DNA of 64,000 nt from Podarcis bocagei (Eukaryota), in assembly GCA_964188305.1 (NCBI GenBank), contig OZ076890.1; one strand, written 5' to 3'. Position 1 is the first letter of the stretch. Every line of letters begins with the position of its first letter. Below are positions 11,505 through 48,887 of the stretch, in pieces. A program made the position numbers and the translations under genes. The notes beneath the pieces are model-generated. The model had not been told where the DNA came from, ran no database searches, and was given only the letters and a program-made list of their open reading frames with translations.

Positions 11505-14500
11505 TCACTGGGAGTGTTGTGCATCTGCGTAACTTCTACAGGATGTAAGAGTACTCGACTTTGGCGGCATAATTCTGTCTGTGTGTGTTTAACCCTTCGT
11601 AAACAGCAATATATCATTTGCATTGATACAGACACCAGTGGATTTTCTTTTCCACGTGTAGCTCAACCAGTGTGTGTGATCCAGCGGCAATTGCGACACC
11701 CCCATCCCTCTGAAATCAATGGTACCTAGTGTCACTAAATATACTTCCTAAGCCTGATTGTCCCCATTATGTTGAAGTAACTTTTAGTGAAACTTTAAAT
11801 CCAAATAATGGGGGAAATCCAACCAAAATTAAGCAGGACAAATTCCCACAGGTTTTCATTTATTCACAAAGCAGGGCTCAACATTGGCGGGATCTTACCC
11901 AGTGCACAAAAGAACTTGGTTGTGTTTGAAGAGATAACTTTAGCAAGGAGGAAATCCAAATATGAAAACACAGCCTGGGAGTGGGAACAGGGCCAGACTG
12001 AAGGCACAGAGTGATATCCTAACATTCACTTTTTTAAAAAAGCAAAAAAGCAAGGTGTCAAATGTCAGTTTCCACTTCAAATGAAGTTTCTATCTCTGAA
12101 AACAAGCTGAAGTAGAATGCCAGAGACAAACAAGAGCTGCTATTTTTAACAGGGCAACCATTTTCCTAGAAGTTCGTCTCCCAGCCCAGAAAAGGGTTAA
12201 GGGGAAAGAGAAAAAACATTAAGTAGGTTGGTGAGATCCCCAGCCCTTGATTTGATTAAGTAACCCAACCCTGGTGGCTTCCACCATTGGAGCTGCTGCT
12301 GTTGTTGCGCCGCCGCTGCTTTGAGTGCTTTCAGTAATTCAATGACGCCTGCTCACTCCAGGGAAAGAAATCATTAGCGGGCTCACTGGAGAAGCATTAG
12401 CAGTCCGAAAGGATCGGCGCTGCGTGCAGCAGGGAAGGCAGGTGAAAGGCAACCGGATTTTCGCGTCCAGCAACAGAAGGGCCTCGCCTGCCTTTCTTCC
12501 CTCCCGAACGCGCCATCTCCGCCCGCATTAAATTCTAGTTTGCTGCATGAGTGAAGTGTCAGGACAAGCTGCGTTTTATTAACACGATTATCGCGGCGCG
12601 TGATTTATTCCAGTGCCGGATTTTAATTGCTCTTTGGAGGTTCAGTCGTTTCTTTTGACTGAGCTTCAGCCTGCATCCCGCTGTTAAATGCTGGGTTAAT
12701 AAGTAGGGGGAGCCTTTAATGCACAGGATACCCCTTCAGCTCTTCCTCTCACCAAAAAGGAGGGAGGGGAGGGGAAAGTGCGCGCAGGCACAAAATGCCT
12801 CGCCAAGGGGAGGAACGGCGAACGCGGGACGCGCTGCGCTAAATTGCTTTTCTGCAGAGAAGCGAGGCTTCCCGGGCTTTTTTGGGTTTTTAAACGGAGA
12901 CGTACTAGGGTGCAATCCTTAACGTAGCTACCACCGAGGAAGTCGCCCTGCACAAATCGGGACCCATTTCTAAGCAAAACGCGTTTAGGATCGCGCGGAA
13001 CGGATGGAGACGTTAACCTGTGTATTCCTAATAAGGGGCCATCCTACACACGGTTAATAACTTGGGGATACAGCACCACTCAAACTAATTCACTATCCAA
13101 TATAAGTACGTATGCGATTAGGATCGGGCTCTACTGCTTCAGCCCTTCAACCCCCGTGGCTCAACCAAGCCCAGTGGGATTACCCGAGAGTAAACGGTGG
13201 AGGAGCCCTGGGGTCTGGTCGGACCTATCCACGCAGAGGCCAGTGGAGAGCGCCACGCACGCACGCACGCCTCGCAGTTTAAAAGCCCCCGTGCTCCAAA
13301 ACAGACGAATTAACCCTTAAAACCGGAGCGGAGGCAAAACCTAGGTTGCGTTTGCGCACAAATGCTCCACCCACGATCAGAGGACATCCGTATAAGCGCC
13401 AAGGAAAGCCCTGTGTTCTCTCAAGCATTTCATGAGCCCTTCTTGTTCCCCCTCCCAGCTCCTTGAAGAAGCCTTTTGTGCAGATCCCCACGCGCGGAAC
13501 ATATTTTACTGAAATGGCACCGTCCCCTCCCTCCCTCCGCAGCAGCTAGCTTGCAAGAGCTGACCCCAATTGCTGTCAAGGAAGAGGAACTGGTCCCTTC
13601 TCCTCTCCTTCCTTCTCCTCGCACCCCCCCCACCGCCCCAGTAAAGGCTAGGACGAAATATCGCCCTATCATTCAAAAGTTGTTGTTCCAGGGGAAAGAC
13701 GGGTTTTGCTGACCAGATTTAGTGTTTTCCAGATGCACGGCTCGTAATGTTTTCGAATGGAACAGCCGCAGCCTGGAGAGTGATTGAGAGTTTTACATAC
13801 GGTTAGTAGCCGCCCAGAGCGCTGCCTCATCTGTAAGGAATGGAGGGGACACAAAGTCCAAAGAGATAGGGCTGTCTGCACGGAGGGAGGGGACGCCGCT
13901 CCCTCTCCCCTTTCCCCCACCCCTTTTCTGAAAAGCAGGAGACATGCCCGGGAGCCTAATCTTGCTTTTTATAGGCTGGAACTGAGCTAAGGCTCTGGGT
14001 TTCCTCGCGGGGAAATGTATCGTTGGTTGCCATCGGCTGGTGCTCCTGAGATCTGCAAAAGTCGACCCCAATAGCGCTATCTGAGTCGACCCCAGGTACT
14101 TGGGGCGCTGTGTGGGGAAGGGGAGCCGATGGCTTCCAAAGGCAGATATGCAAACGAAGCTACGCCCTGAATGCAAAGGTTTCCTAAACTGGGAAGAGAG
14201 GAAGGTCAAAGGCAAATTGCCAAATAATCGGCCCAGATTATGATAGCTCCCCAAACGCTACAGTGCATATTTAAAAATAAAACAACAAAACAAGGAGAAA
14301 AAGAAAACTATGTTGCCTTCTGCTGCAAGACAACCATCTCTCTTTGCTAGTCCACGCCGCGAAACTCGCCCCGGGCAAAGGTGTTTGCACAGAAGGGGCC
14401 CAGAGCGAGGCTGGGATTGCTTAAGGTCTGCCGCGGAGCTTTTGCAACAGAAGAAGTTGCCAAATTCCCCTTTGGAGCGTCGCCGCTGCATCCCAGCGAC

Positions 14501-17500
14501 ACGAGGCGAAAGGGAGACGGGATCCGCGGGCTGGGAGAGAAAGGCCTTTTCGGAGGCCCGAAGAAGAGTTGCAGCAGCCGGGAGCGCGCAGCGCCTGAGC
14601 CGGTTCTGTGCAAAAAGTACAACCGAGCGCGCGCGATCCCTTCCCGGGAGGTGGGCGAGATGTTTGCTCGTTTCTGCTCGTTTTCAGGGTCGCGCTTCCC
14701 AGCGCATACATACGTTGTTTATAATCACCGCCGCCCTGATGAACTTTTTGTGAACTGTTTAAAAGTGGAGGTCTGTTGAACAAACAGCGGCGCCACTGCC
14801 AGCCATAATTTCATTGCAACAAGCAACAGACTTTTAACCCTTCGGGCTCCAGGAGGAGACGTTGCTGGCAAAGCAGCAGCCCTCTCTGCTTTGTGGCTGT
14901 GAGCCTGGAAGGTTACATATAAGCAACCACTCCGCTTACGGAGCAATGGATCCACAGCTCAGTTAAACCCGAGCAATTTGGATCTACGGTCCAGAGCAGG
15001 CTTCACCCGCAAGTCCCAGTGAAATCAAAGAAATGTGCTCAAGGCTGCAGTCCTACCCACTACTCGTTTACCCGGGAGTAATCCCCAGTAACGCATTGGG
15101 ACTAGAGTAGACATGCACTGGTTTACCCTGTAACTACCCAAACCTTCCTTTACCCTCTTACCTTAAGGTAAATCCCAAGACTAAAACAAGGATGGAGGAC
15201 CGGAAGCCCACTCTCCTTAGGCCGCACCCCACTGGCCCTGCCCCCACAAACCCTTCGGAGCGCTTTTGTCTGGTTTTAATGTGTCCCGAAGATAATGCCT
15301 CTTCGCTTGCCTTGACGCACGTTATAGAGAAATAGAACACAGAAACCTTTTGACTCTTGCGCGGTTAGAATGTAGGCTACCGTAACATCCATGGAGCCAC
15401 CGCCGCCACCTTTTGCCTCTGGCCTCGCCCACTGCCGGCCCCGAAAGGCTCCTTCAGGTGGGACCCTCAGGCTGAAAAGGAGTGCCCCCCCCGCATCGAA
15501 ATCAAGACAGACCCAAGTCCCGCTTGTCTATAGCGAGGCCTAGTCCCCAGAAAGTGCGCGCAGAATCGGGGCTGTTCAGGACTGGGTGTTAGCTCTAGGT
15601 ATTAATCGCCTGCCTTGACCATGCTAATAAAAGGCGACATATATAATGCATAGTGTAAATTAAAATGCACAAGCGTCTGAGAAAGTCACGCTGAGAGACA
15701 TTGTCAAAGAAGTGGGGTTTGGGCATAACGAGGGCGGGTAGGCCGCGGCTGTTAAAGTTTGTTCGTGTTTATTGCGATTATTTCCCACCCACCCCCAAAA
15801 AAATCAGTACATTGAATTAGTGTGTATGCTTTAGCTGAGATTCCGGCTACACTAGAGAGTTGGAGTTGGACTAAAGACCGCAGTTTTAGCTAATTCGTCC
15901 TGAAAATTAAATAAACCACCTCCCTGGCTGTTTCTCCGCCTCCGTGGAGCGATTCAGGGCTTGGCACTTTGCTTTTCCGAGTCCCCGCAAGTCTCCTACC
16001 TTCGGGAATCTCCCCGTTATGTAACACTCTTTTGCTTTATACATAGAAGAGGGGGACGTAAGGAAGGAGACAACAGAAAATAACAGAACTTCATATATCT
16101 CACGATTTCCCCCCCCCCCCGCAAAAAAAAACTTGATTAAAAGCTCTCTCCTCGGTGCCTCCCCCTCCCGCATGCTACTTTGGAGAGCACCCCCCCTCCA
16201 CCTCGTTTATATACTGCTAGCTGGGCGCCAGCACCTCGGCCAGAGTTGCTAGAAGCTGCCATAGCTGCAGCTTCCGACCGTACCAGCCCGCGACGGAAAG
16301 CAAAACCTCCTCCCCGGGGTGGGGATCGCGCCGCGCCTCCTGCCGAGCGAGGCGAGCTCGCTGGCTGCGCGAGAATGTGACCTAAGGCGGCAGCAGCAGC
16401 AGCAGGCAGGCTCCGAGCGCCAAAGAGGCCACGCGGAATTTCCTCCCCGGAGGTGTCCGGCTGACAAATCCGTCAAGCTCGCCTGGGAGGAAAAGGGGGG
16501 AGCTGCATGGCGGGGGTTTCGCTGCAAAACCTGCTCGGTGTCCGCAGCCGAGAGGAGCCTCCTCTCCCCCGCCCCCCTCAAGCTGCTGCGCTCATGTTAC
16601 AGAGCAGACTCGAAAGGAAAAGAAAAAAGCGGCCCCGGCGCTCGGCGTGTCTGGCTGAACACCCAGTTCTCCGGGCACCACTGGCAGCCGCCGCAACTCC
16701 ACATCATTGGGTGGGAGGCAAATGCATTCACGCAGCGCCCTGCTTGGCTGTTGGATCCTCCTCTGCCCTCCCCGTTCTCGTTCTCTCTCTCTTCAAAAAG
16801 GGAACCGCTTGCATCGCCCTCGCAACGGCAACAGACTCTTGGCAGCCACTGGAGGCGGGCGCAGGAGCAAACTTTTGCTCGCACGCTCCTGCCTTCGCAA
16901 ACTCAACAAACCTGGTGCCCGCGGCCAGGGGAAGCAGCCGCAGCGCTTTGCGCTTCGCCTCACCGGGAAGGAGGGTCCGGAAAAACCATGCCGAGAGCGT
17001 TGATGGCCTCTCTTTCTCGCCCTCTTTCCCGCCATTCAAGGTGGCGAAGTAGCCTTTCTTGCCAACCAGGGCACGAAAAGGGGTGCAAGGAGGAAAAATA
17101 ACCAAGCGAGTAAGCCCCAGCCGGGCTCCAGCGAGCCAGGAAGGAGAGCGAATGCCGCGAGCGCACACGAGTTCCCTGTTGGCGCCTTTCCTCTTTCCAC
17201 CTCCTGCTCCTTTTGGCAGCCGGCCACTTTCCACTGCATAAACCACAGGCCCGCCGTCAGCTGCACGGCAGGCGGGTCGGAGCCGTAGAGCAAGCGGACG
17301 TGGATGGCGAATGTCAGGGGGGAATGGCGCTAACCCAGCGGGGCTTTCGCGTTAATCAGAGAAGGCCCTCCTCTGTAATCAAAACAAGACCATACATAGT
17401 TTGCCCATCTCTAGCTCCCTGCCCGTTTCAGGTCTCCCCTAAACAAGCTGCAGAGCATCTGATGGGGAGGCAGCCTTTTCTCCTATATTTCAATAACGAC

Positions 17501-18544
17501 ACGACGTACACTTAGCCTATTCATGAGCCTGCACATGTACTCAAAGCCTGAACTCGGGGGCAACTACACGCTTTCTGGCTCTACATTACTGGAAATGTAT
17601 TTATTGCATTTATATATCTTTTCCAAGGAGGTCAAGGTGGCAAACGTTCCCCAATTTTAGCCGCACATCAATCGCGCGAGGTAAGATCAAAGGAAAGGGC
17701 AGAGCGTGTCAAGGTCACTCAGGGAGCATCTTGGTCTGCACCAAGCACTACACTGTCCTGGCTTCCGTTTAAGTCAAACCACCTTTTCTTCCATTTACAA
17801 TTTCGAATTGGCCCAGCCCTTCCTATCTTATGTCTGAACCAAGCCCCGCTGTGTTAAACGGGCCTCGCCCCACGGTATTACAACTGTAACCTTAAGATAT
17901 TAGTGCAGTTTGCTATTTTAAACAAGGCTGCACACTTGTGTGCACACTTGTGCACACTTGCCTCGGAGTAAGCCCCCTTGAACACAGAAGAATTTATGAA
18001 TAAGCATGCACGGGGTCGTGCAAAATACGGTGGCATAAATTGGAACACGCCGTTGCGCAGAGGTGGCGGGAAGCTACGTTGTACCAGAGAGCTTGAAGCA
18101 CGATTGTTAAGCAAAGTAGGAAAGAGCAAACTAAGTATCCACGGCTGGGAGGAAGGCGGCTGACCTTTAGCCTGGACGTGTGGCATTTTGTCTGGCCACA
18201 AAGCTAAGCACAATGTGCCTGCGACATCTCCAACCCGATTTTCTCATGTGCGTAACGGAGGCGCGCAGAACGATGCCCAAGTTTGCCCAAGCAGCGCGCG
18301 GAAAAAGAGAAGAACGGGTCGGGTGGCTATTTCAGGGGCTTTTAAACTTCCTCTTTCTTATGTCTGCGCACGTTCCTCGGGAGGCTTCCTGCGCCGTCAC
18401 GTGCGCCTTCGCGATCCGGACTTTTTTCTCATGTAAACAAAGCGCTGTGTAGGCATTACGGGGCGGCCGCGATCGATTGGGCACAGGCAACGGCATCCGG
18501 AATGGGGGATTCCGGACTCGAGACTCAGATAAAACGGGACGGGA

Positions 18545-18549
<5 letters not shown>

Positions 18550-18603
<54 letters not shown>
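18550..18603. repeat. (AG)n microsatellite
   Basis: Direct inspection. Confidence 0.97.
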
Positions 18604-18606
<3 letters not shown>

Positions 18607-19164
18607 TCTTTCCCCATCTCCTGTTTTCCCTTGGCTTTTGTAAGGAGCAGGAGCTCCAACCCTCGGGGAAAGGAGCCGTGTGCATTGCAAAAGTGAGGGG
18701 TCGAGAGCAGGAGGAAGAGGGGAAGCGAGGACTCCACAACCCCAGCCAACTGCTGTGTAGCCGCAGGAAAGGAAAGGACTTTCCTGCCGTTTGCCAGGGA
18801 GACCCTGCTTCGAAGGGAGAGAGTGGCTTCAGACAGCCTTTGCCTTCGTTTCCCTGGAAGATCGGGGTTCAAAGGGGGCGGTGCACAGACCGGCAGCGCA
18901 TCCAAAAACCTCTGGCAGCAGCCGGTCGTTTCCTCCACCGCCGTGCGCAAGGCTTCGGACCGCAGCAGCCTCCTTTGCACATCAACCGCGAAGCAAAGCG
19001 CAGTGACTTCGACTCTTTACCGCCATTTGCCAGGAAAACTTGTGAATAAGTGATGTTTGGGGACGGGGAAGGGCGGGGAGGGGAGAGGAGGACGGCGGAA
19101 GGCCGTCAATAAGGGAAAGGTAAAATGGCTGGCGAGCCTTCAAATAACCCTGCCCGCCGTCTCT

Positions 19165-19215
19165 GTCTCTCTCTCTCTCTCTCTCTCTCACTCTCTCTCT
19201 CTCTCACACACACAC
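19165..19215. repeat. (CT)n(CA)n microsatellite
   Basis: Direct inspection. Confidence 0.93.
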
Positions 19216-22064
19216 GTCGTCTCTTGCCAACGTTTTCTGCGCGGTGGAGAAATAGCGCCCCCGCTTCTCCTAGTACGAGAGCCGGGGGAAGCTGTGGGGC
19301 CCGTTTGTTCCACCCAAATGAACTCGGAGGTGGGGGAGGTGGAGCGGCCACGCGGGGGGGGGAATATTGGGGTGTCGTCGTGCGCCTTAATAATCTGGTC
19401 CCTCGTGAAATAGCCCAGGCACACGGGACGTTGCAGGAAGCAGAAACGAAGGCAACAAAACAGAATGAAGGCGAGAGAAGTATTTCTCTCGCGACCTCGC
19501 GTCTCTCCCCCGCCCCCCGCCGTTTGATCCGAGAAAGTCCCCGAATTGACTTGTGCCATTAAGGCCCAGTTCCCGCACTACGTACACGGCGAAAAGCACC
19601 TTCGCCTCGGGCGTCGATGTGGGGGTCTCACCCCGTCCCATGGGGTCCCCTCCTCCACCCTTCGGAGAGGATTATAGACTCGGCAGCACCGAGGCGAAGG
19701 GCGCTCGCCTGGCCTGTACGGAGCGCAGGCACCTCCTCGCGCTGCCGCCTCCTGCAACTCTCCTTCGCTCTTTCAGCCAGACCGAATGAGTCATCCCAAC
19801 CCGTTTCGTCTTTGAGATCCCCGACCGGCCGCGCCATTTTAGGCGCGCGCACAGACACGGGCTCGGTTTCCGCTGCTGCTGCTGCTTGGAGAGACAACAA
19901 GCAGGCGGTGACAGAGGCGGAGGAGGGGCGGCGGCGGCGGCAGCAGCAACGGGCCACAGGAAAGGAGAAGGGCCTCCGTGGAGCCTACCCGCTTGGCACT
20001 CAATGGGTCTTTCAGGTACCTAAGCGGACGCCGCCTCCCTGGGTATCAGCCAAGCGAGAGCGGGGGAAAACGCAGGCAAGGCCCCGTCGGCGCCTGCGGC
20101 CCATTAACCCCTCGCACGCCCCCCAGCCCGGACAGCAGGCAAGCTGGCTGGCTTGCAAAGACAGAAGGAAGAGGTTCCTCCCAGCCCAGTTTTGGTCTCA
20201 CAAGGGTGTGCTAAGAATGCAGGTTAGGGAGGGAGTAAGCTGAAAGAAATTATTTTTTAAAAAAACAAAACCGTATTTGTTAATAGGAAAGTTTAAGAAG
20301 GAAAACCAACACAAGTATCCAGCTATGTGCGTGACTAGTACACATAAACAAACCAGCCCAGACCCAAGGTCGGTTGCTGTGAAGACCAGGATGAAATGGT
20401 AAACCCGCTTGGTCCACACCCTCTTGCTTTTTAAGCCCCACGGTCTACAGCAGCGCGCGTGCACGGGGGAGGCCTCGCACACCCACAGCCGAGTTTCTCC
20501 CCCCCCCCCTTCGTGATGAATGCGCTCCCCGCCCTCTCTCTTTCCCCTTGCCTGCCCCGCTTGGGCCGGCGCTGCCCTTTGTGGCTTTTTCGGCCCGGCG
20601 GCCGCGCTGCGAGAGCCCAAAGAGGTCGGCGTCGGCCCCCGTATTCACCGGGGAAACGAGCAGATATTGATCACGGGCGAGTTGATTTTGCTTAATTGTG
20701 GCTGACAGTGCCTGTGGTTTCCTCATTTACGGAGCAACAGCATCGAGGGTCTGATTGATTGGGAGCGCAGCGCCTCCCACTCCCCGCTCTCCCTCCCGGC
20801 AGACACACACACAGGGGGGGGGGGCGGAGCGAGCAGCCACCTCCGAGAGGAGCCTGTGTGAAGGCGAGTCCCTCGGGAGGGGAAGGAGCAGCTTCTCATT
20901 ATTCAGCAAATGGCCGGCGCGCCGGCAGCTAGAGATGCAGCTTGGTTGGTTCGCTGTCGAGCGCTCGGGCGAGCTTAAGTAGCCTTAAATCCTCCCGCTC
21001 CCCCCGCAGGACCGTCTGCCTGCTTTTGCCTGCGTCGTCGGCCCCTTCGCCTCCACCGCCGCCTCCTCCTCCTCTTCGCCCGCCAGCAGATTGGTCCGCG
21101 AGTTAAGCGCTCGCGAATGGAGAGCTTTTAACAGGGCGGGGGGTTGCAATCCTTGTCGCCTAAGCGCTCGCTCAGTCGAAGTCCCCACGCCGAGGTGGCG
21201 AGCTCGTCCCCCGCAAACTTAACTCAGGAGCAACCTCGCTCTCCTTTCAATGAAATGACGCCATAGCAAAGCAGCTTAAGGCGCAATCCAGCGCTCACAA
21301 GCCCCGGTTGAAATTAATTGCTAAAGAACAGCAGCCGTTCCCTGCGCAGCTTTGTCAGCCAGGCTTGCGCAGGAGACCTTCCCGTTGGCTTGCGCCCTTA
21401 GCCATCTTCCTGCGGAGAAGCAGCGAAAATCCAAACCACCAGCACCATCACACTTCGTCTGTACAACTCCTACCAGTAAGGAGTTTTGGTGCCAGCGCTT
21501 TCTGGAAAATGTGCATTAAACGTGCCTTTTAAAATAAAGATGAGCGCAGCAGACTTAAATGTCAGAAAAGGAGCTGTGTGGCAACCATCTGCAAGCCGCT
21601 TGATCCAGGATGACTTCACAATTGCCCTGCGACCCTTTTTATATCTACTCAGAAGTAAACCTCGTTGAGCTGAATGGGGCTTACTCACAGGTGAGCGCGC
21701 ATAAGATTGCCGCCTTAAATGTGAAATCTGGGCCCAGTCCCTAAACCTGCCTATCAGTTGCAGGAGGGTTTCTTCCACGAATCATGTTCTCCAATCCAGA
21801 TTTCCCTACATTAGCATTTCTAGCTAACTGTCCCATCCCAAGTGCTTTCCGCTCCTTTAACTTTTTTTAGCCCCCCCTAAAGTGCATTCCTGCACCCCCG
21901 GGGTGGGTTCCATCGTAAAGCAAATGAGCACAGGATTGCCAGCGGTCCAAGGCTCACCCAGAGGAAGACACAGAATACACAGCGACACCTTCTTCCAGGT
22001 AAACATACATAGGCTGGAGCCGAAAGACAATTTATGCGAAGACGACTAGGGCTTGGGCATCACT

Positions 22065-22241
22065 CATAGGAACAAAGGCTTATCATGAACCAGACCATGG
22101 GCCTATCTTGCTCATATTGTCTGCACTGACCGGCAGCAGCTCTCCAGGGTTTCAGGAAGGCCTACCTGGAGACGCCAGGGATTGAAGCAGGGACTTTCTG
22201 CATGCAAGGCAGATGCTCTACCACTCAGCCAGGGACTCCCC
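22065..22241 (-). mobile_element. tRNA-derived squamate SINE (Squam3-like)
   Basis: Minus strand shows TGGCTGAGTGGTAGAGC (A box), cttcaatccc (B box) and a ttcctatg tail. Homologous to the copies at 29028 and 61181. Confidence 0.8.
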
Positions 22242-24262
22242 AAGTCCAAACAGGGCCGCTGGTGGGGATAGGAAGCGCTCCTCAGTTCTAACTGTACATC
22301 GCCTAGCACCCTAAGGAAAAACCCTCCAGTCTCCCAGAGGCATCTTCAGCAGAATCTATTCCGCCTTTACTGAAAGCATCGTACGTGTCCTCAAGCAGCA
22401 AGCAGCGATCTAGACGAATCCTCCGGTTTTAATATCCCAGCAATGCGCAGGGCAAGAACCGGCCCAGGGAGCACAGAGCAGGGCCTCGCGGACAAAGTTT
22501 CACGGCGCAGCTGGGATTCCTCCTCTGGCTGCGAAGCTGCGCGCCCCCTCGGCCTTCCTCGGAAGGCTTAAGGACCCCGGCGCAGCCTGCCTTGCCATCT
22601 TGAAGTCGTCGGCTCCGAAACGGGAGGGAGGCGAGGGGGGCTGAGCGCGGAAGCAACTGCGCTGCAGATGGGCGGCTATGAATTTTTGCTGCTGCTTCGA
22701 GCCTTAATTACTGGCTCTTGATCCGTGGGACTACGACACGACACCGCCAAGGTTAAAATGCCCGGAACAGCTCTGAGCAGATGTGAGCGAGTTGGCAGAC
22801 GCGCAAATGAGGTCTGCCTCCAAGCACGATAACAAGTGACTAATACATTGCATATCGCTGAAAGAAAATTATTTTCCTCTCATTTGCATTAGCTCTCTCT
22901 CTCCCCCCTTTAAGACCAAAATAAAAAGCCAACAACAGCACCACCACTCGCGCGCCCCGCTCAGAGGCAGCAGTCTAATCCGGGGGGGGGGAGAGAAAGA
23001 TGCTGGGTGACTTTTAGAAATTTGTGGAAGCAGGAAAAGATTTGCCAGTGTTTTGGCAAGGCAGCCGTGTTTATCTTTCCGCCTTTGCTCCAAGGCAAAA
23101 GTAGTTTCGCAAGCAACATTCCTGCAGAAAATGGCAGACGTCACGTTAGAGCTCGATTTATTGCTCTGGCGCTTAATGAATGACTGCTGGGGGTATCTTC
23201 CACCCAGAGTGCCTCGTGCACAGAAACTGGAGAGTGACAGATATGCCGCATGAGAGTGACGAGGAATGAAATTCGATGTACAGTTGCCAGTTGCCCTGAA
23301 ACAAGCCGGCTTTGCCCAAAACAGAAATTCTATTCACAAACCAGAAGTGCTCGGATTGAAGACGATCGGCGCCACAATCCAAAACAAAATAGAATTATCC
23401 TTATTCCCAGGTTTTATATGACTTGCCTCTCCGCTGCATGCATGTTAATTCCGAAGCAAGTCCCACAGTGCTGAATGGAGCTCATTCGCTTCCAAGCAGG
23501 GTTAGAACTGTATCACTAATGGCTTTCCGCTGAAATCAAAATGACATATTTCTAAGCTGTTAAGGGGGGGGGACCCATTTCAGACAGGCTGACCCCTCAC
23601 TTTAGCGAGACTAATCATCTCGGTACTAAACCAGTTTATTAAACAGATCCCATTGAAATCAATTGATGTGAATCGTACTGGGATCACAGGTTCCTCAAAA
23701 AGCATTGAAAGATTTAACTGCCAAGTGTAAATCTACTTTCCTGTATACTCGCAATCAATTTGAAAACACTAGGACATTTCCACACAATATTTTACAAGTT
23801 TTCTTTTCTTTTTTCTTTTTCCCACATCTTTAATTCAAATATAAGACCTAAACAGGCTACAATGCCTGTTCATTTTAAACATGGATCTTTTTCTCTCTTT
23901 GTCACACTTTAAGTGTTTTTGCAGCCATAGTGTATCAGTAGTGCAAGAGAATACTCAGAATTATATTTCATGTTGTGTGCATGCGCCCTTATAGGTCTTT
24001 CCCAGATGCACTCAAATGGCACAAGTGAGATGGAAAAAACATATTGAAAGCTGCTTCAGCTTCGCTTTATGATGTGTGGGAATTCAGACACACTTTTGTA
24101 CTTCCAGATTAATGTGTGAAACAGGAAATTGCACGAGTGAGATGCACAGGCAACGTATGTGGGGGGGGGGGTTCATGCATTCCATGCAAGGAGAAATTGG
24201 GTGTATTCTTCACATATTACACCAAAGCATTAAAAGCCCACTTTGCCATCATGTCTCTAGCC

Positions 24263-24726
24263 CAGTGTTTCCCAACCTTTTTTGGGCAAAGGCACACTTG
24301 TTTGATGAAAAAAATCTCGAGGCACACCACCATTACAGCCCCGTGACGTCAGCGCGCAGCGTCACGCCGGGAGGGACGCACGAAAGTGTAAGTTTCAATT
24401 TTTTTCCCTCCCCCTTGCCGGGGAACCTCCAAGCTTTGGGGGTGGGGGGGGGAGGAGGCAGCAAAGCGAGGCAGGAAGGAGAGCGCGGCTTGGCTGGGTG
24501 AGCTTTGGCAGGGGCAGGGAATGAGAGCCGCGAGGCGGGCGCTGCGGACGGAGGCGCTGCCCGCCGAGCTCGCAGGCAGCCAGGCAGGCAGACGGCGAGA
24601 GCCCCGCGCTGGGCGGCCTCTCCTCGCCGCCGCCGCCCCGCCTCCCTCCAGGCAACATCTCGCGGCACACCAGGCAACATCTCGCGGCACACTAGTGTGC
24701 CGCGGAACAGTGGTTGGGAAACACTG
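24263..24726. mobile_element. Young hAT (Charlie-type) non-autonomous element, 464 bp, GC-rich interior
   Basis: Perfect 15-bp TIRs cagtgtttcccaacc/ggttgggaaacactg and a perfect 8-bp TSD ctctagcc (24255-24262, 24727-24734). Confidence 0.93.
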
Positions 24727-25182
24727 CTCTAGCCATTCTGGGTCATTAGCAATAAGGCGCTGATGCACTTTCCAAGGTGGGAAAGCTGTATAAGCTACTA
24801 ATTGGCTATATTGATATAGTTGATATACAAAGAAGTGCTCGTTCCATTACCTACATAAGGAAGCGTCAAATTTCTGTAGCAGAATGATTCCCACCTAATC
24901 TGAAAAGTTTATGAAGAGGAGTGAAGCTACCTCACTCTGCTAGGGGGACAGGAAGGCTGTGGCAAAGCAGAGTGCTTCTTGCGCATGTGTGATCAAAGAG
25001 CCACTCTGGATAACAGGTTTCACTCCCACTGAGCCAAAGCAAAGTCTAGGAACCATGTCAATGTGATGCAAGTAAAGTCCAGGCCACAGTCCCTAACTAC
25101 ATTTACCTGTAAGTAAGCCCCATTAAATTCAATAGGATTTACTGCAGAGTAGACAAGGTTAGAATTGCACATTGCTAAATTT

Positions 25183-25321: not shown

Positions 25322-27024
25322 TCAGGGTTTTGTTCTGTTTACTGTTATGCAAATGTTGGTCACATTGAAATAAGCATTGTGTAACCACCATTTTTGAGGT
25401 CAGTATGCCTCAGTATATCAGTTTCTGCTATTAAACGTATAGCCTGCTTTCATGCTTCCCATAGTATCTGGTGGACCAGTCTGAGAAAAGGATGCTGTGC
25501 CACATGGGCCATGCCCCGGATTCAGCACTCATTTTCTTATTAAACCTGACTCTCAATCAAGAGAATCAGGAGCAGGATCACACAAACAGGATGTTGTTGC
25601 CCCTAACAAAATTGGTGTACCTCAGTCATTGACATTATTGTTTATGTAAAAGCAGGGAAAAACCTGCAAACAAAGCATCATGAGATAGATTCCTTTTGCT
25701 GCAAAAGTAGTTTTGCTCCACGTTTTAACACTTAGACATTGTGAGAATAGCAGCCTAGTTTTCTCAGAATAGATTCAGTTTATTTCGGAACTTGATCGTA
25801 CAATATTTAAAAACAATGGAAGGTTAACAGATTTGTTCAATAAATACAATGGAAATTTCCTCACATTACAAACTAATCTAACTCTGTTTTGAATTACCAT
25901 GCAAACCAGAACACACAAAACACACTGTGTGTAGCCCTGATCTTCTATTTCTCTCACTCACACACACATACATGCACACCAAACCTTATCTTTCTTCTCC
26001 TAGGAAAGCCAGGCAGTTTTGACTCAGTCCTCAGTAAAAAGCAGTTTTCTCCCACTATGTGCAAAAGGTATGCCTATCTTGAACTCCTCTATCACTTTTT
26101 AAATACAAATTTGATTATTTCAGAGTGATTAGAACGCAGTATATTCATGGATTTCACTTGTATGCTTAGGATCACAGCCCTAGAACTCACCCATCTTGGA
26201 CGAGCTTTCCTTGGTATTTTTTATGTTCTGGTTTCAAACAAAGCCATACTCATTTAGCAAGGGGTGTGACTGCATACTGGAGCTGGTCTTGTGTGAGGTG
26301 AAATACTCTTTAATCCTGAAAGAATGTGAAAATTTACTTCCCACTTGCCTCCCACAATTTAATTCTCCCCTTAATAAACCCATTTGGAAAGATCAAATGT
26401 GAGATCTGCCTAAAATTGTGCCGTTTATACTTGGTTTTAGTCCCGAATTATGAAAAGGGTTTCATTTGAACCAGGAATTTCCCTTTCAGTGCCTGCATAT
26501 ATAAATTGCATTGACATTGCTAATTGTGCCTGATATTGCAAATTGTGCCTTGGTATCTGCTGGTAAAGGAGAAGATCCCAGACATGCCATCTCTTATTCC
26601 GGAAGGAGATACTGGAATAGGTTGGTTCCTACCCAGGGTGGGACAAAAACAGCTTCAGTGCTTAAATTCAGATAGGACTCTCCAGGGCAGAAACCTAGTG
26701 GCATTGACATCTGGAGCCAGAATCTGGCGAGAGTCATTTTTCTTTGCATCTGCAAGCTGGCTAGGGACTACAGTTAGCATACACAGAGTGCACCTGGAAT
26801 GAAAAGTGAGGCTTTTGGATCAGAGAGTTTGGCTACTACAATTCCTGAGCATTGGCAGACTATGCACTGGAGGCATGTGAAAGCTGAAAGCATTGGGGTA
26901 TTAGTACACAAGTCACTACCTACAGTTCTGCCTTCAAACCATTTCCTCTAGAATTTTAAAGAACATTTCTATCCTGCTTTTCCATTATAGAGTGTCCAAG
27001 GCACTATATAACTTAAGATCCACA

Positions 27025-27130
27025 GTCAAAATAAAAAAATTCCTTCCAGTAGCACCTTAAAGACCAACTACTGTAAGTTAGTTCTTGGTATGAGCTTTCG
27101 TGTGCAAGCACACTTCTTCAGATACACTGG
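27025..27130 (-). mobile_element. Penelope-like element terminal-repeat fragment
   Basis: ttccttccagtagcaccttaaagaccaacta...gagctttcgtgtgcaagcacacttcttcagatac resembles reptile Penelope-like termini as I recall them and contains the diagnostic minimal hammerhead. Confidence 0.75.
27088..27125 (-). ncRNA. Minimal type I hammerhead ribozyme motif
   Basis: GUAU-CUGAAGA-A-GUGUGC UU GCACAC-GAAA-GC-UC^AUAC. Both catalytic boxes, stem I (GUAU/AUAC), stem II and the palindromic AGCU mini-stem III are present. Confidence 0.8.
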
Positions 27131-29027
27131 ATGTTAACACCTGGATTTCTTCCTAATGAACCAATATGGTTATCTATCATGCATGTATAAATGAACTTAC
27201 TCTAAAATCTATGGCTTGAGTATTGCAGCAAAAATATCAAGAAATCTGTGATCATCCAGTCCTGCTAATATGTCCCTCTCTGAATTCAGTTTGAGACACC
27301 TAGACTGCAATAGTCACAATTTGTGAGTTAGAAGGTGGAGCACAACTATTTCCACAACAGAATGAATCCTGCCTAAGTGCCAAACATGCCATGCTCACTG
27401 GCAGGAGGACAAGCAGAGCCTCCCCCAGAGATCTTAAGGCACAAGTTGGCAGGTGTTAGCGAAGGTGCTTTGGCAAGTACTTGTAATAAATCATACAAGT
27501 TTAACAAAAGCACTTAATACTGAACTATTTAGACTGTCTTGAACAACTTTCCAGTATCCTTGAAGGACAGGGGCCTTCTCTGTGGTAGCTCCCAGATTAT
27601 GAAACACTCCCTCCCTGTAAAGTTGCATATGTCTCCCGTGTTGGCATCATTTTGCTGACAGTTAAAAATATACCCTTCGGGGCTGGGTGACAAGGGTTGG
27701 CAGTCTATTATTCCTTGCCTGCTGTGTTGTGAACCTAAACTGTTTTGAGTATTTTTATATAGAAAATATATGGAGGTGGGGGGAGGGTGCCGAGCAGAAA
27801 GCAAAAACACTTCCTTTACTATGTGTATGTGTCCATGGGCTCCTATTGGAAGGAGGACAGGGTAAAAAATATAACAGATTGGGGGGGGGGGAGAGAAAAT
27901 ATTGTGGGATGCGTTATTACTAGAGCAGTCAAGTACAACATTTTCTTGTTGCCTAGAATGGACACACAGCGGAATGTGACTCCAGACAGGGAGGACTTCC
28001 TGTCATACCTTCTCTGGAGCTTCTTCCCCCTGTGTGTGACCCTAGCTGACCAGATAAAAGGGCAAGCCACGCAACCATCTCTCTCTTGCTCTCTTGGACC
28101 CTCGCTGTCCTGGCTCTTATCCAGCACGCAGCTCAACCGTCAAATAGGATGGAGCCCAAAAGCAGAAAGTCTGAGATGTAGCTCAGACTTCTTTTCACTG
28201 CAGCCACAAGATAAAACCTGCCTTCAGATTACTGCTGTGAACTGAATGTGAGTAAAACTTTATTCTTACTTTTAAAGAAGACTGTGTTGTGTTATTCTTA
28301 TTTTAAGAGGGAAATCAAGGGGAAACTTACCAGGAACAATCCAAACTGGACAAGCCAGGCTGGATTGCTTAATTAAAGGATTATAACGAATCATCAACCT
28401 GCTTCCAATAAGTTGCAAAGGAAATGTGCTCTGCTGTACTCGCTAGTGTGAGTGAGGAGGGATAATATTCAAACAATATATCCTCTCCTACCTTCCTTAA
28501 CATTCCCACAAATATGAAAGATTATGTGCCATTTTTAAACGTAGTGAAACAAACAGGGATCAACTGTATCCTCAGGACAATTATCCTGGAGAATAGCCCA
28601 ATGGGCTTCAAGGAGAGAATCCTGAACTAAGCCATTTGTAGACTGGAGATTGTATGTACAAAAGTAACTGAAGCTGTGGTCCTGAAAACACCTGCAAGAT
28701 TTTACATCTTCAGATTTTTTTCTTAGATGCAAGTGGAACGTGTCCTTTGGTAGGCCCCCTCTTCTGTCAGTGGGCCCATGTGGGTTTATCTGGCTGTGGT
28801 GGGCAAGGCACCAAGGAGAAGCACTGTGTCTAGCTCTGTCTTAATTTTCCACAATTGCCTGTAACAATGCTAGGTAGGAACTATTATCATAAAAGAATAG
28901 CTAGATCCAGCTCCCTGGCACTGCTTTGAATGCAAGGCCGGGTGTGGGTGTGTGCGTGCAAGGGGCAGGCATCAGCAGAGGACCCTGCCAGGTACTTGGA
29001 TCCTAGCAACTCCCAAGGATGTGGTTG

Positions 29028-29641: not shown

Positions 29642-30878
29642 ATCTAGTCTAGCGTAAGAGCAGGCCAGTTGTTGTTTTTTAGGTGAATAAACCTTTCAAA
29701 AGAGTGAATTCACAGGTGCGTGTTCTCAACTACATGACCTCAGTATCAAGTGTTGACAGCCATCACAATTAGAATCATAGAATTTTAAAACTGGAAGGTA
29801 CCCCAAGGGTCGTGTAGTCCAACCTCCTCCAATGCAGGAAGAGGACACACAGCACTTCCTTGGGGTTCCAGGATGGATGCTTTTCAAAGGCGCAGGCTCA
29901 CACATTTCAGCTGAGGCATGAGATAGGCAGAAGTGTGTGTGCATGTGTGAATCAACCCTCAGCTAAGCTGCTTACATTCTGTAACATCCTCGCCGGGCGC
30001 ATACATCCTTTCCCTACTTTCAGAGGAATATTATGCAGTTGGGGACACGTGTGCTAAATAAATATTGCAGGTCGTCCCCCTCCTCTAACTGGCCCCAAAA
30101 AGCTCATTCCTCCCAGTAGCACTGGGAGGTGTTGTTCTTTCAGCTCAGCTTTGTGGTTCCTGCAAAACCACCAGACACACTTACAAAGGAGTAAGGGCCA
30201 TTGCACCCCGCAAGACTTGGATTTCCAAACAGGCTGGTTGGGGACTGCGCCGCGAGATATTCAAAGGGGGAGGGGAGAAAGAGAGGCGGGCCTCAAACCC
30301 CCATCCCAGGAAATCGATGAGGAAGATGATGCTGGGCTGGATTTCTTGTGTTTAATATTTGTTTTGTTTTTCCCTCGGGCATGCTCGCTACTTTCTTTAC
30401 TAGGGCCCGGGGCGAAACCGTTGTCCCCTGTCGCCGCGCCGCCCCCTTTAGTTCTCTCTCCCTCGCCATAGAGAGAGCTTTGTGTAAAAGCCGAAGAGGC
30501 GCTGGCTGCTCGCGCTCCAACAGCTGTCACATTATTTGCACTAGCTGTAAACAGCCTTCGCCCCCCCCTCCGCCTTTCTCCCTCCCTCCCCACACCACAT
30601 AGTTAAATCCAGACTAACAATCCACAGTTAGAGATCAAACCAACAACAGCAGCATTGTGTCTGCCCTTCCTTGCTCTAGCATCACTCCTGCAGCTGGTTT
30701 ACTCGAAACAAGGAGCCCCCCTCTCCCCTCCCTACCCCCCGCCTCCCCCCAGGCCAGGGAACTATTTGTATCAGCCAGTCCCTCACTCTCGCGAACTCTC
30801 CTTGGGCAATAAATGGGGTCTTTTAAAAAGTAAGCTTTCCTCCGCCACCCCCGTCCTCTTTTTGCTCTTTTTTGACGC

Positions 30879-30883
<5 letters not shown>

Positions 30884-30941
<58 letters not shown>
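30884..30941. repeat. (CT)n microsatellite
   Basis: Direct inspection. Confidence 0.97.
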
Positions 30942-30945
<4 letters not shown>

Positions 30946-32026
30946 CCTCCCCAAGTCGCCCTCTCCCCGAAGGACCAGGTCAGAGCTGGAGTCCTCTTCT
31001 GCTCGCCTCGAGTCCAGCTGCAGTAGCTTAACGCGCCCCCCGCCCGCCCGTGCCTTTGCCCGGGTCTCGCTCATTGTGGCTCTTAGAAGCTTTAATGCCT
31101 CTCGTTCCGCAGGAGAAATTCCTCAGCTGGCTGCATTTGCAAGCGCGGGCGTCGGTGGGGGGGGGGGGCGCCGAGCAGAGAGCAGAGACTGTTGCTTTCT
31201 TGCCGTCCTGCTTTTAACAGTTTCTTTCCCTCGTGGTCCTTAAGAGACGCCCCCCGTCGCCGCTGCCCCCCCCCCGCCCCCAGCGCTTCTCATCAGCTCC
31301 CCAGAAGCTACAGGCCCCGGACAGTGACGTGGACCCGATTATTTGCACTGAGTGACACGAAGAGACGCCGTGTCACTCAAGCGAGAGGGACGCGGAGGGA
31401 GGGGGTGGTGGTTTGAAATCCTCTTTTTTCCAGCGCCTGCCGCACCCGGCGCCCGCTAGCTGAAGCGAGCACTTGCAGGCCGGTTTTCTGCTCCCCGCAC
31501 CAGCTGAGGCCCAAATACTCGAGTCGTAGCTGTCTGCAGAAAGAACGAGCTGCCAGAAAGGGCGCCCGGGGGGTTATTCTGATGCTGGGATTCCCAGCCT
31601 GGGAAACTTCCACCCAGTAGAAGAGATAGGGGTTACTGGGTCGGTGATTGCGGGGGCGAAGAAAGGGGTAGAACCATAGAAGTGTAGAGTTGGAAGGGAC
31701 CCTGAGGGTCATCTAGTCCAACCCCCAATGCAGGACTATGTAGCTCTCCCATATGAAGGTAGGGCATCCACATTAGCGTAGGCGCAGCTCATGGCTACCC
31801 ATGACCTTGCCTAGGTACCACCTTCTGGCTTGTCCCAGTTCAAATGAAAGGAGGCCTCGCTCATCTCTTATTCTCACGTCCCACGCCCACTAACCGCTCG
31901 ACAATATCCAAGTTGACTCGGTCCTAAATCCCTGTGTTCAGTTAGGATTTACTCTCAAGGCAAGTGCATATAATATTCCCCCTGTTAGAGCGACCTAGAC
32001 CCACTGGATATTGCTCCCGGACATAT

Positions 32027-32027
<1 letters not shown>

Positions 32028-32059
<32 letters not shown>
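32028..32059. repeat. (CTG)n trinucleotide repeat
   Basis: Direct inspection. Confidence 0.93.
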
Positions 32060-35000
32060 ATACTCCGCTATGGTTTTGGCCATGCCCCGGGCAAAATAAC
32101 GGAGGTGGGAGATCTTATGCCGCGTGACAGGAGCAGCCTCAGTGAGGCCTGCCATATTTTCTTGGACTACAATTCCCATCAACCCTAGTCATTGTATCCA
32201 GTGGCTAGGGATTATGGGAGCTGTAGTCCCTGCCGAAGGTGATGCCGGCGAGTGCCCCCCCCCCTCTCTCTCACACACACACACGTGTCCTCCTAGGCAC
32301 CCTATATGTACTCATTGAGCAATTGAACTATTTGCCTATCCTTAAAAATAAAAAACCCTGCTGCGTAAAATACAGCTCTTGTATGCCAAAGTCCTCAGGA
32401 GCCGGAGGAACAGCTGCTTAGGTGTCCTGATCTTTTGGGCAAATAGCTGAGAAGGAAGCTGCTTTGGTCTCTCTGGGCCAGCGGGCAATTTGCCACCAAC
32501 TACTTGTTCAAAGCCCAGGCGACCCTCACCGCGGAACAAACACACAGCCTTTTACATGGGAAAGAGACCCCGGTCCAGCCTGCGGCTTTCCTCCTCTCGA
32601 GTAGCTGGCCTTTAGGTTCAGCGCAATTCATCTCGATTATGACGGGGAGACCAGGTGGCTGGAGCTGTGCAGGCCGAGTCTCAGCTGCGGTCTCCAAGAG
32701 TGCAGCTTTGGGAGGCACCAACAGCCGCGAAAATTAACTCTTGACCCTAAACACATTTACATGGCAGCCGGCCCTGCTCAAGTCAAGAAGGCTGGCTGGC
32801 TCCAGCGTGCAAATGCAGTTAACTCTGCAAAGGGAGTAAATCTCGTGGTTGTACCTCCGTAGACCCCTGGCAACTGACAAACAGGCCTGTGTCATAAGCA
32901 ACCTCTCAAGACCGTTTCTTTTTGTTTTCCATTTCGCCCCCTTTTTATTACTACTGTTTTTATAAAAATAATTTTCTAAAAAAACTCCCGAAAATACAGT
33001 TGAAAAACTAGGATACGAAAGAGGCGCGGGGAAACTAAAGCGGTTGCGAAGGGAGGAAATTGGCGGTGCATTTCCTTACTTGCCAACTCCTAAATTTTAT
33101 TAAACCATTGGGGCTTACTCCTAAAGTGTGTCAGAGATGGCAGCCTAAGCGTCTTGCTTTCACCTTAGAAACTGTAACAGCCTAACCCGATGCAAGATTA
33201 CCCGCCGGAAGCAAAACGCACAAGAGTCCTTAAATGGGCTTTCCCCCCACGTTAACTGCGCATGGGGTCGCAAACGTATACCGCAAGACTTCTCTGGAAA
33301 TAAGTCCCATTTAACTTACTTCCGAGTAACCACGCATTGGATTGGGCTGCCGGCGCGGCAAAGGATTGTTTGTGCCTTCTTCGCTGCCACAGAAAAGCAG
33401 GGAACTTGCTCCACTGCAAGCCGAAACCCCAGGCGGCATCTCACCCCAACCAAGGCAAACCAGTAAGCTCGAGGGAACTTACTTCCGAGGGAGAAGACAT
33501 AGGATCGGCCTGCGCGGGTCTTTGGATCTGGGGCTCTGCCTGTGCTCGAGACAGCGGGAGGCGCAGACTCCAGCTCTAGCTACTAAAGGTTAAAAGGTTT
33601 CGCTAGCGCAGCTCCTGTGTCTCCGACAGACGAGCCGCTGCCTCCGCAGCACCCAACTTCCGAGCCAAATTCTCCCGGGCGAGCGATTCCAAGCATCCGC
33701 GTCTTTGTAGCCCTGCTGTGGTCAGTTACAACCGGTGCCTCAGCCGAGCTGGCAATTTATTTGCTTGCCGCTGTACAAAGTGGGGGGGGGGCGGGTGGAG
33801 AGAGGAGGGAGAAAGAGAAAACCATTGCTAACAAAATAATGTCAGCAAAGGCTGCAACACATTCTTGCGAGAGAGCAGCGCTTCGTGCCTACCGAGGCTC
33901 TTTCAGCACAAAGGCTTTTAGAGAGGAAGACGGGAGGGGGCGGGGGAGGGAGCGAGAGCGCTCTCGTATTTCAGGGCTGTTGTCCCCCTGGGAACCAAGA
34001 ACCAAGTGTAGCTTCAATCAAATGCTGACTTCTCCTTCGGGAACTCAGCAGGAAACCTGATCTCACAAGTTTATGCCTGCCTCCATCTACACGGGCTGGG
34101 CTCCCCCCACGCCCCCATCCGCCTTCCCTTTCATACCAGCAATTTGTATATAGAGACGAGATCCAATATTCCTGATTGAAAAGGAGATGAGGCGGGAGGG
34201 CGGGGAAATCAGGTCGGGGACTCTCCGTTCTTGCCAAAAGCAAAACAGCCTCGAAACATCCACGCAGGGCAGCCTCGCGTCGCATCCACTGGGGCGAAGC
34301 CGTTGTTCCAAGCTCGCAAGCCGTCTCCTCCTCCCACCCGTATTCTTTATGCTCTTGATTACACGTACAAGGAATCTCCGGCGCTTAAGGCTGCAGCCCT
34401 CTTGGGAAGAAGTCCCACTGAACTTAGCGGGGCTTACCTCTAAGGAAATGTGCCTGAGAGCGGACCTTTGGCTGTTTGCTTCCGCACCCAGATCATCGTT
34501 ACTCAGCAGTAAGCAAGGATGCTCAGCAGGTGGTACCGGCTTCCTGGCCATTATTAGGAGGGCTGCATCACAGCCCGAGGACCCCCTGCAGGATTTAGGC
34601 GCGCTCAACTGTTTGTAGGATAGGGCTCTTTGGTCAGATATACGAAGCCACTGGAAACATTTACGGTTCGCTCCGTTTCGACCCATTCCCCGAGACCAGA
34701 TTAGCCGAACCACTTGGTTTCACGGATCCGGTTAGTTCCACTAAAACAATGCAACCTGATCGGCGTAAAAGTTTAAGCGCTGTCTAGAATGGGAGCCCAG
34801 GCATGGGCCAGGTGGAACGCGCCCAAACAGCAACCTTGTGGCAAGAAACAATGCTCTCAGGAAGGCCACTGTCCACCCGGGCCACCCCATCTCCTCCTCC
34901 TCTCCAATCAATCATCAGAAAGGATTCTTGATGGGGAACTGCAGCTTCTTGTGCAAGACCAACTGCGAGCGTGGTTTACCCAACCCGCCCGGCCAAGAAG

Positions 35001-38172: not shown

Positions 38173-41100
38173 GTGCCAAACAAACAGGGCTAGAAGTATA
38201 AGCCTTACAGCCTTTATAGATATTTGTGGTTGGGCCACCTTTGGAGCACTGCATGCAATTCTATTGCCCCATCCTAAATAAGGAAACTATAGAACTGGAA
38301 AAGGTACACAGAAGGGGGACAAATTCCTTACCAGGATAAAGACTTTTAAAGTTGTGAATAGTTTGAAGAGGGTGTATGATTTTTTAAAAAAGTTTCTCCA
38401 CTTCTCAAAATACTAGAGTTTAAGATTGCCCAATGAAATGAATCAGAAGTCAATTCAGACCTGACAAAAGTAAATACTGTACAAAAGTAAATTTATGGAA
38501 CTCGCTGTCACAGGATGTGGTAATGCCACTAAATAGGATGGCTTTTAATGGGCTAAACAAATGCATATAGAGGATATCGCAGCTCCTTCACATGATAGCT
38601 AAATGGAACCCCCATTTTCAAAGGCCAATGTACCAGAATATTTTCTGCTGCCAGCTGGAGACCTACTTTTTCACCCAGGCATTTGTGGGTATTAGTGCCA
38701 GTAAGAATCCTTCTATGTTATCATTTGTGCAGTGCTGCTTGTTGTGTTGATTTATTGTCTGCTCCCCTTTTTGTCTTATGGAATACTGCAATTTTTATAT
38801 ATTATTAATTGTATCTCACACTGGGTTTGTTTGTCAATGACGAGCAGGCCACATATATTAAAAAATTATTATTATTATTACATAAATACCAGAGTCTGGG
38901 GACAGCTGTGTTGCCTTGCTGCCCTGCTTGTAGATTTCCCAGAGGCATCAGTCTGGCTACTGTTGAAAGAGAATGCCGGACTAAGCGCATCTCCCCCCAC
39001 CCCCAGTCTGGTCCAGCACTGCACTTCTTAAGGTCTTATTATAGGCTGTGCATGCTCAGATCTATATATACAGACATCAGAAATGAAACCAGCACAGCCC
39101 CAAATATAGTGCCCCATCAAATAGGGCCATTACAAGCCCCCAGGAACCTGTCAATCCCTGTCAATAATCTGGGCTCCAAATCTCACTTTCTATGAATGTG
39201 GGTTTAATTTAATGTGGCTTAGATATCCCTGGTTGAATTTATGCAGGAAATTATTATAAGCTACCCTGTTTTTGTTTGTTTGTTTCTTTGTTTAATGCTT
39301 GGGTAGTTTCAATCCATCCTAAATATTTACTCTGAAGAAAGCCCCAAGGATTTTAATGGAAACTACTTCCAAGGAAGTGTGCATAGGATGGCGGATATGA
39401 CCTACTTCCAAGCAAGCAAGTTTGCTTCTCTAAGCCTGCACCCCCTCCTGCATTTAATAACACCACTGAAGTCTTCTGAAAAGCCTAAGCAAGATTGTCT
39501 TCATCTAAGCCTACAATTCACTTCCTTGATGGAAAGCACAACCTTGCAGTGCAAAAATAGACAACATCCGCTTACTTCTTACCCCCCCCACCAAAACAAG
39601 CACAAAGTAAATATAGCCTGAACTCTACCAATTCACTTTCCTTCACTTTTCAAGAGCCTCCCATCCTAAGGGCAGCCACAACTGCAATTTTGTTCAGATG
39701 TGGGAAACTGATTTTATTCCTGATCACTAGAGCTGTACCCTTTGATAGAAATATTAAGTCGGCATGCTCTCCCTTCTTAAACAAAAACAAAAAGCAGCAG
39801 AGTATTCTGTTCCTGAAGTCTGACAAGTATCCCAGTTTGTGCATTTTTAGGAATGCAGTTTGTGCATTTTTAGGAATCTGAAGTTGCAGTCCTTTGCACA
39901 CTTCTTTAAGGAGAAGGCTTAACTGAGCAAAGTGGGCCTAGCTTCTGAGTAAAACAGGATCTTTCCCTGCCGCTGCAGCCCCCTCGACTGACTAATAGCA
40001 GAATGCTTTCAAGTTAAACAACAACAGCACACAAGTGAAAGCACTGAGGTTTCAGACATCAGCCCTCCAGACCTGGATGGAAGCCCCAGTCATTTTAGCG
40101 GGCCTTCCTTCCAACTAATTTGTTTAGGATTTAGGTGTTAGAGGAGTGACCAGGTTTTCTGTTCTGTTTTTGTTTGTCTCAGTTTACGGTAGGCAGGCAT
40201 TACGCTCAAGGATCCCACCTAAAGCTAAAATCGCATATAGTCAAAACATATAGGGTGCAAGGGATGGCCAAAGTCTTTCTGTCCAGACACAGAAACTCTT
40301 TCCACCCCCTTTTAATTCCCACACACCCACCTCAAATTTTTTGCTAATCTGAATGCCCACAGGTTAAATGTGTTTAAATTGCAAGGTAACTGTACTGAGA
40401 AGCTAGTCCCATGGCCTTAATTAAAGCTTACTCCCAGAAAAATGTGCTCGGGACTGTAGCCTTAGACACTAAGTAAAGCAGGTCAAAGCTGCAATCCTAT
40501 CCATACTTATTTGAATGAACACACACACACCCCGATGAACAAGCTTGCATAGGATCCAACTGCACAGAGAACATTTGCGAAGAGAAGTGTCCCCAATATA
40601 AATGGTCAGCGCTGTTTCGTGGCTTCTTTTGCACGCGTGTTCCAGAGAGCGGCTGCAGCGCACTTTGGGAGGACGTGGGGTGCCTCCCCTCCCCCGCCCA
40701 GCTCTCCTGCTGCTACTAAATTAAGGCGATACAAAGTGCACGGAATGCTTTCCTCTAAGGAGATGTGCCGCAGAGCGGAACAGTCACCCACCCCCTTTCC
40801 TAACGGTTCGCTGACTACACTCAACTCTCCGCACAGCCAGTTTCCAGGGAAGCGACTGCTGCCGGATTCTGTATTTTTCTCCTCTAATTGCCTTATGATC
40901 AAATTAAAACCTTGTCCTTGCCTTCTGGAAGACAAGACTCACTCGCGATCCAATATATTCTTTTTACTTAATAACATATGAGAGGACACGGCCGAAATTC
41001 CATCAAGGATCGGAACTCTTCCAAGGGACTCGCGCGGGTTTCCACGGTGGGATCGCTCAGGATTCCCACTCTCGCTCTCTGGAACAGAGCCGGATAACGT

Positions 41101-42191: not shown

Positions 42192-42194
<3 letters not shown>

Positions 42195-42237: not shown

Positions 42238-42241
<4 letters not shown>

Positions 42242-48856: not shown

Positions 48857-48887
<31 letters not shown>

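Follow-up and report, generated by a model that had tools for sequence, protein, structure and literature searches.

A complete hammerhead ribozyme motif lies on the minus strand of a 64,000-nt stretch of contig OZ076890.1 from Podarcis bocagei (assembly GCA_964188305.1), which was analysed at its full length and is referred to below as the window. The motif is genuine and not a product of chance, is found once, and is located in the sense orientation upstream of the coding exons of BCOR. It is best viewed as a solitary remnant of an insertion related to Penelope-like elements (PLEs), which would be catalytically silent and would evolve neutrally (probability of about 85%).

The motif is 38 bases long and is composed of the following parts:

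27088–27125, minus strand: complete minimal type I hammerhead (min-HHR), from direct reading and as the sole descriptor match in the window
27125–27122, minus strand: 5' strand of stem I, GUAU (direct reading)
27115–27121, minus strand: catalytic box CUGAAGA, C3 to A9 (direct reading)
27114, minus strand: unpaired A after A9 (direct reading), a trait of PLE hammerheads according to PMC4209133
27100–27113, minus strand: stem II, GUGUG-CUUG-CACAC, with the pair G10.1-C11.1 (direct reading and folding)
27099–27096, minus strand: GAAA box, G12 to A15.1 (direct reading)
27095–27094, minus strand: GC, positions 15.2/16.2 (direct reading)
27093–27092, minus strand: UC, U16.1 and C17 (direct reading)
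27096–27093, minus strand: palindrome AGCU in the place of stem III (direct reading)
27091–27088, minus strand: 3' strand of stem I, AUAC (direct reading)

All the invariant hammerhead positions are kept (C3, U4, G5, A6, G8, A9, G12, A13, A14, A15.1 and U16.1, with a C at position 17) and the core is intact at 13 positions out of 13. The elements that define a min-HHR core, i.e. CUGANGA, G12 A13 A14, A15.1-U16.1 and a residue other than G at H17, are therefore all present. Pairing is of the Watson-Crick type throughout stems I and II. Stem I consists of 4 bp (GUAU/AUAC) and stem II of 5 bp, with CUUG as its tetraloop, the G at 27113 pairing with the C at 27100. Cleavage is predicted 3' of C17, i.e. 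between 27092 and 27091.

The first-pass annotation of this DNA gave the same letters for the minus strand from 27125 to 27088, together with the same complete core and the same self-complementary AGCU instead of stem III, and the bond at which it placed the cut is the one obtained here from the position of C17. It also recognized the stem II hairpin, which is indeed present, but drew it as GUGUGC-UU-GCACAC with a 2-nt loop. Since a 6-bp hairpin closed by a loop of 2 nt is sterically impossible, stem II is described here as 5 bp and a CUUG loop.

The window was searched with a purpose-written, relaxed min-HHR descriptor modelled on the published one, which asks for at least 4 pairs in stems I and II (G-U allowed) and accepts an optional bulge and 0–6 palindromic bases in helix III. 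It matches 27088–27125 only, and this motif is still alone in the window when one core mismatch is permitted. Neither a second nor a degenerate hammerhead occurs on either strand of the 64 kb, even with relaxed stems and one core mismatch, in keeping with the single copy noticed previously. The Rfam hammerhead families (Hammerhead_1, Hammerhead_II, Hammerhead_3, HH9 and HH10) give no match at the gathering threshold in the whole window, nor any in the region 26800–27400 with E values up to 10. Thus, of the Infernal/RNAMotif-type search that had been proposed as a check, the descriptor part recovers the motif (one match) whereas the covariance models of Rfam do not. This non-match is expected, as the motif does not carry the helix III hairpin that these models expect. 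An Rfam match to the OppA thermometer (14 bits) was judged meaningless.

PLEs scatter hammerhead motifs of this kind through the genomes of fish, amphibians and reptiles. The min-HHR class was defined in the terminal repeats of PLEs by Cervera and de la Pena (2014, PMC4209133), and several of its traits emerged outside the search terms, namely an extra base separating A9 from 10.1, the pairing of G10.1 with C11.1, palindromic bases at 15.2/16.2, a short helix I of 4–5 bp and a long helix II. All these emergent traits are found at 27088–27125. Taken together, the Podarcis motif shares with the PLE min-HHRs described in that work the type I topology, the CUGANGA/GAAA/UH core, the unpaired nucleotide after A9, the pair G10.1-C11.1, a helix I of 4–5 bp, an extended helix II, the lack of a real helix III, the palindromic 15.2/16.2 and the single, dispersed occurrence. 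Most min-HHR copies are indeed single dispersed motifs, found in reptiles and absent from mammals (PMC4209133). Two differences are noted. Helix II has 5 bp here versus 7–8 bp in the min-HHR families of Schistosoma (PMC4209133). Furthermore, whereas PLE min-HHRs sit in PLE terminal repeats, the copy described here is known from its motif architecture, without any RT or GIY-YIG remnant alongside.

The green anole PLE Poseidon_Ac (PAc) carries a hammerhead at the pLTR-ORF junction, which is made of a 3-bp stem I, CUGAGGA, an extra U, a G...C stem II, GAAA, CG and UC (Frangieh et al. 2024, PMC11167929). Both hammerheads are from squamates and the order of their parts is identical, but their stems have unrelated sequences and PAc has the palindrome ACGU where AGCU is found here. 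The extra base of PAc creates the ATG that opens the ORF; the Podarcis motif has AAG at the corresponding place, in a frame that ends in a stop after 15 codons. In addition, PAc is found in tandem elements whereas the copy described here is alone. As its stems are unrelated to those of PAc, this copy would come from a different PLE lineage or from a derivative that is not autonomous.

The hammerheads of non-LTR retrozymes and satellites (newt satellite 2, axolotl, Xenopus; PMC7229834, bioRxiv 10.64898/2026.07.22.740005) are likewise of type I with an unstable palindromic helix III, likewise require a second copy and are likewise related to PLE terminal repeats. They form tandem arrays that yield circular RNAs, whereas there is one unit here and no tandem repeat: self-BLAST and unit-by-unit alignment found no head-to-tail units of the retrozyme kind in the window. 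A possible decayed tandem unit located 101 nt downstream (a 23-nt direct repeat, 74%) was rejected, being no better than those of shuffled sequences (p about 0.4). The architecture of the motif, compared with those of PLE min-HHRs (PMC4209133) and of the anole Poseidon (PMC11167929), supports its initial identification as a Penelope-type minimal type I hammerhead, and a PLE is the most likely origin of this copy.

The sequence that follows the cut site may belong to the same insertion:

27040–27087, minus strand: sequence from the cut site to a T-rich run, possible 3' 'tail' of the element, with provisional boundaries

The insertion may end at the T-rich run, which is met about 50 nt beyond the cut site on its 3' side. 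The motif and its 3' flank presumably resemble a very abundant repeat of turtles and crocodilians that has the same hammerhead layout. Self-BLAST and alignment revealed no repeat of the motif or of its flanks, 27040–27087 included, elsewhere in the window. The candidate target-site duplications beside the motif are at chance level and none is convincing; an adjoining 14-nt inverted repeat is at chance level as well. There is no long ORF from 23.0 to 31.5 kb, and the comparison of ten ORFs of 27.4–29.3 kb with Pfam did not detect any RT or GIY-YIG match that would betray a PLE ORF remnant. A protein-database search with a neighbouring 152-aa ORF gave no match and an exact look-up of two neighbouring ORFs gave no record. 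A full-text literature search for strings of the motif sequence, a first metagenome pattern scan and a scan of viral contigs for related copies did not return any match either. Five exact metagenome matches (L001–L005) to a 20-nt degenerate pattern of the 3' flank were dismissed as chance matches, as they look microbial and have no hammerhead upstream; two of these contigs, L001 and L004, are identical in sequence.

The CpG at 27099–27100 (C11.1-G12) is the only one between 26728 and 27460 (730 bp), in DNA whose CpG observed/expected ratio is about 0.1. Its retention weakly suggests that the insertion is more recent than the DNA around it. Together, the 13 intact core positions and this sole CpG fit a young insertion; they would also fit constraint.

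Two coding exons of BCOR were recognized in the window:

4457–7306, minus strand: large coding exon of BCOR, 949-aa open frame (six-frame search and Atlas cluster)
10588–10674 (approximate ends), minus strand: first coding (ATG) exon of BCOR (six-frame search; peptide presumed to be the BCOR N-terminus)

The 949-aa frame shares 209 of 256 features with its closest named Atlas cluster, 'BCL-6 corepressor', for a score of 0.95. The frame that opens at about 10674 on the minus strand begins with 15 residues that we take to be the N-terminus of BCOR. The hammerhead lies 16 kb upstream of this ATG exon. Like the BCOR coding exons, it is on the minus strand, so that the sense orientation initially attributed to it holds. 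Just 3' of the large exon on the strand of the gene, positions 3742–3889 are a run of 148 N.

Three CpG-rich blocks (observed/expected >0.6, GC >0.5) are located at 12000–24800, 30500–34500 and 40500–54500, all upstream of the BCOR coding start. The block at 12.0–24.8 kb lies between the motif and the ATG exon, those at 30.5–34.5 and 40.5–54.5 kb lie upstream of the motif, and the hammerhead itself falls in a CpG-poor stretch that separates CpG-rich blocks. BCOR transcription could start in any of the three. As CpG islands are found on both sides of the motif, this start could be downstream of it, and the motif could thus be either in intron 1 or outside it. In the CpG-rich DNA that separates the hammerhead from the ATG exon, a tRNA-Ala is predicted by ARAGORN (anticodon UGC, 22167–22239, minus strand; Rfam tRNA score of 30.9 bits for a gathering threshold of 29), which is either a real tRNA gene or the head of a SINE. 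A GA/CT dinucleotide microsatellite is present at about 30870–30950 and is visible in the ORF list as SLSLSL and RERERE runs.

The ability of the motif to adopt an active fold was evaluated from nearest-neighbour energies (ViennaRNA), which ignore tertiary contacts, proteins and co-transcriptional folding. A monomer cannot build helix III because the pair A15.1-U16.1 would close a 2-nt loop. In a double hammerhead, helix I would be intermolecular like helix III, due to strand continuity at the three-way junction. As both helices are intermolecular, a partner needs to have the same stem I (GUAU/AUAC) and the same AGCU palindrome, i.e. to be in practice a copy of the same family. The helix III made by two copies is calculated at about -3.9 kcal/mol, with a millimolar Kd, a concentration that RNA could not plausibly approach in the nucleus. 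The double hammerhead is calculated at -11.1 kcal/mol versus -12.0 kcal/mol for two hammerhead-like monomers and -13.6 kcal/mol for two minimum-energy monomers. On these energies, the net gain of the trans dimer over two monomers is predicted to be nil to unfavourable, with no thermodynamic drive towards it. The calculation favours a different dimer, in which the near-palindromic stem II forms an extended and inactive duplex (-25.7 kcal/mol). The pair probability of stem II falls from 0.69 in the isolated motif to 0.21 in its native context, and that of stem I is near 0 with at least 100 nt of native flank on each side. The active fold is thus predicted to be disfavoured in the native context.

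These calculations can be set beside what has been published on related ribozymes. For single min-HHRs, cleavage was undetectable, while dimers or trimers were cleaved weakly (PMC4209133), which agrees with the statement of the first-pass annotation that such hammerheads cleave poorly as monomers and better as dimers. The same dependence on tandem copies and slow rates are reported in a review (PMC6765202). The anole PLE hammerhead was cleaved only on addition of the protein of the element, and its cut site coincided with neither the start nor the end of any RNA-seq read (PMC11167929). The monomeric PLE derivatives of Xenopus that bear hammerheads are evenly distributed over the chromosomes and, for non-LTR retrozymes, about 43% of the copies overlap introns (bioRxiv 10.64898/2026.07.22.740005); an intronic copy would therefore not be unusual.

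It is very improbable that the motif is a working ribozyme that cuts the nascent RNA of a BCOR 5' intron, weakly in cis or through a double hammerhead formed with RNA of the same family. In such a scheme, which develops the link between retroelement expression and BCOR proposed in the first-pass annotation, a PLE protein may help and retroelement activity would lower or re-route BCOR transcripts. The intact core, the palindromic AGCU and the strand shared with BCOR speak for it, as does the ability of PLE hammerheads to cleave when dimeric or when the protein of their element is present (PMC4209133, PMC11167929). However, no partner sharing GUAU/AUAC and AGCU is found on either strand of the 64 kb, the trans dimer would bring the net gain of a 4-bp helix with an energy gain over two monomers predicted to be nil to unfavourable, and the active fold would be out-competed in its native context. 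The PLE hammerheads described in the literature have almost no activity unless they are in tandem or are given the protein of the element (PMC4209133, PMC11167929), and even the active anole element shows no cleavage ends in RNA-seq (PMC11167929). Moreover, a cut made in the intron after transcription of the 5' splice site need not alter the mRNA, and the co-transcription of the site with BCOR is only putative. Retroelement-driven cutting of the BCOR transcript is therefore not supported, while a PLE-type hammerhead on the BCOR strand is. The possibility of a neutral remnant, which had been mentioned as a caveat, is judged to be the best reading given the solitude of the motif, the folding energies and the published behaviour of PLE hammerheads.

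Conserved intronic hammerheads, such as HH9 and HH10, exist in amniotes (cited in PMC4209133). The Podarcis motif resembles these two (Rfam RF02275 and RF02277) in being of type I and possibly in the sense orientation in an intron of a vertebrate gene. It might accordingly be imagined as a domesticated hammerhead conserved at this locus and selected in the 5' region of BCOR, an explanation to which the precedents, the perfect core and the CpG kept amid CpG-depleted DNA lend some appeal, but which seems very improbable. The motif does not match the models of HH9, HH10, Hammerhead_1, Hammerhead_II or Hammerhead_3 with E values up to 10. It has neither the helix III hairpin of HH9 and HH10, or any stable helix III, nor loops suited to the tertiary contacts found in them, and its architecture is that of mobile PLE copies. 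There is equally little reason to expect that selection keeps the motif in a BCOR 5' intron across lacertids with cleavage occurring only when RNA or protein from a PLE of the same family is expressed. If this were true, a Polycomb co-repressor gene would be sensitive to retroelement activity.

The expected count of the pattern used in the first-pass annotation is 0.01 per window. The relaxed descriptor has one match in the 64-kb window (27088–27125) versus 0 in 300 dinucleotide shuffles, and 0 in 22 Mb of first-order Markov sequence searched on both strands; with one core mismatch permitted, there is still no match in 60 shuffles. The copy also has traits that go beyond the demands of the descriptor, namely the bulged A, G10.1-C11.1, stems that are entirely Watson-Crick and the C at position 17. 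In view of these empty shuffled and simulated sequences and of these descriptor-independent traits, it is hardly credible that hammerhead boxes came together by chance in unrelated DNA, whether intronic or intergenic. The flanks devoid of demonstrable repeat homology in the searches made would agree with chance, as would the few chance matches to the relaxed descriptor that a 1.5-Gb genome should contain (tens at most, by a rough analytic estimate).

The history of the PLE-type remnant can be sketched as follows. Its source would most likely be a PLE-type insertion, short and 5'-truncated or non-autonomous, that entered CpG-poor DNA in the orientation of BCOR. Owing to the intact core, RNA carrying the motif could in principle supply half of a double hammerhead. 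As the motif is a lone monomer without helix III, with a stem I of 4 bp, no loop-loop contacts and no partner nearby, it is expected to show no catalysis in whichever BCOR transcript contains it and to evolve neutrally; both the absence of cleavage in vivo and neutrality are most likely.

The motif is of a kind already known and adds one more dispersed copy to the ribozyme motifs scattered by PLEs. As matters stand, it is of little importance. It would become important only if conservation of this copy at its locus, or ends produced by its cleavage in vivo, were demonstrated. A developmental repressor gene would then have incorporated a ribozyme from a retroelement, which would be a rare event.
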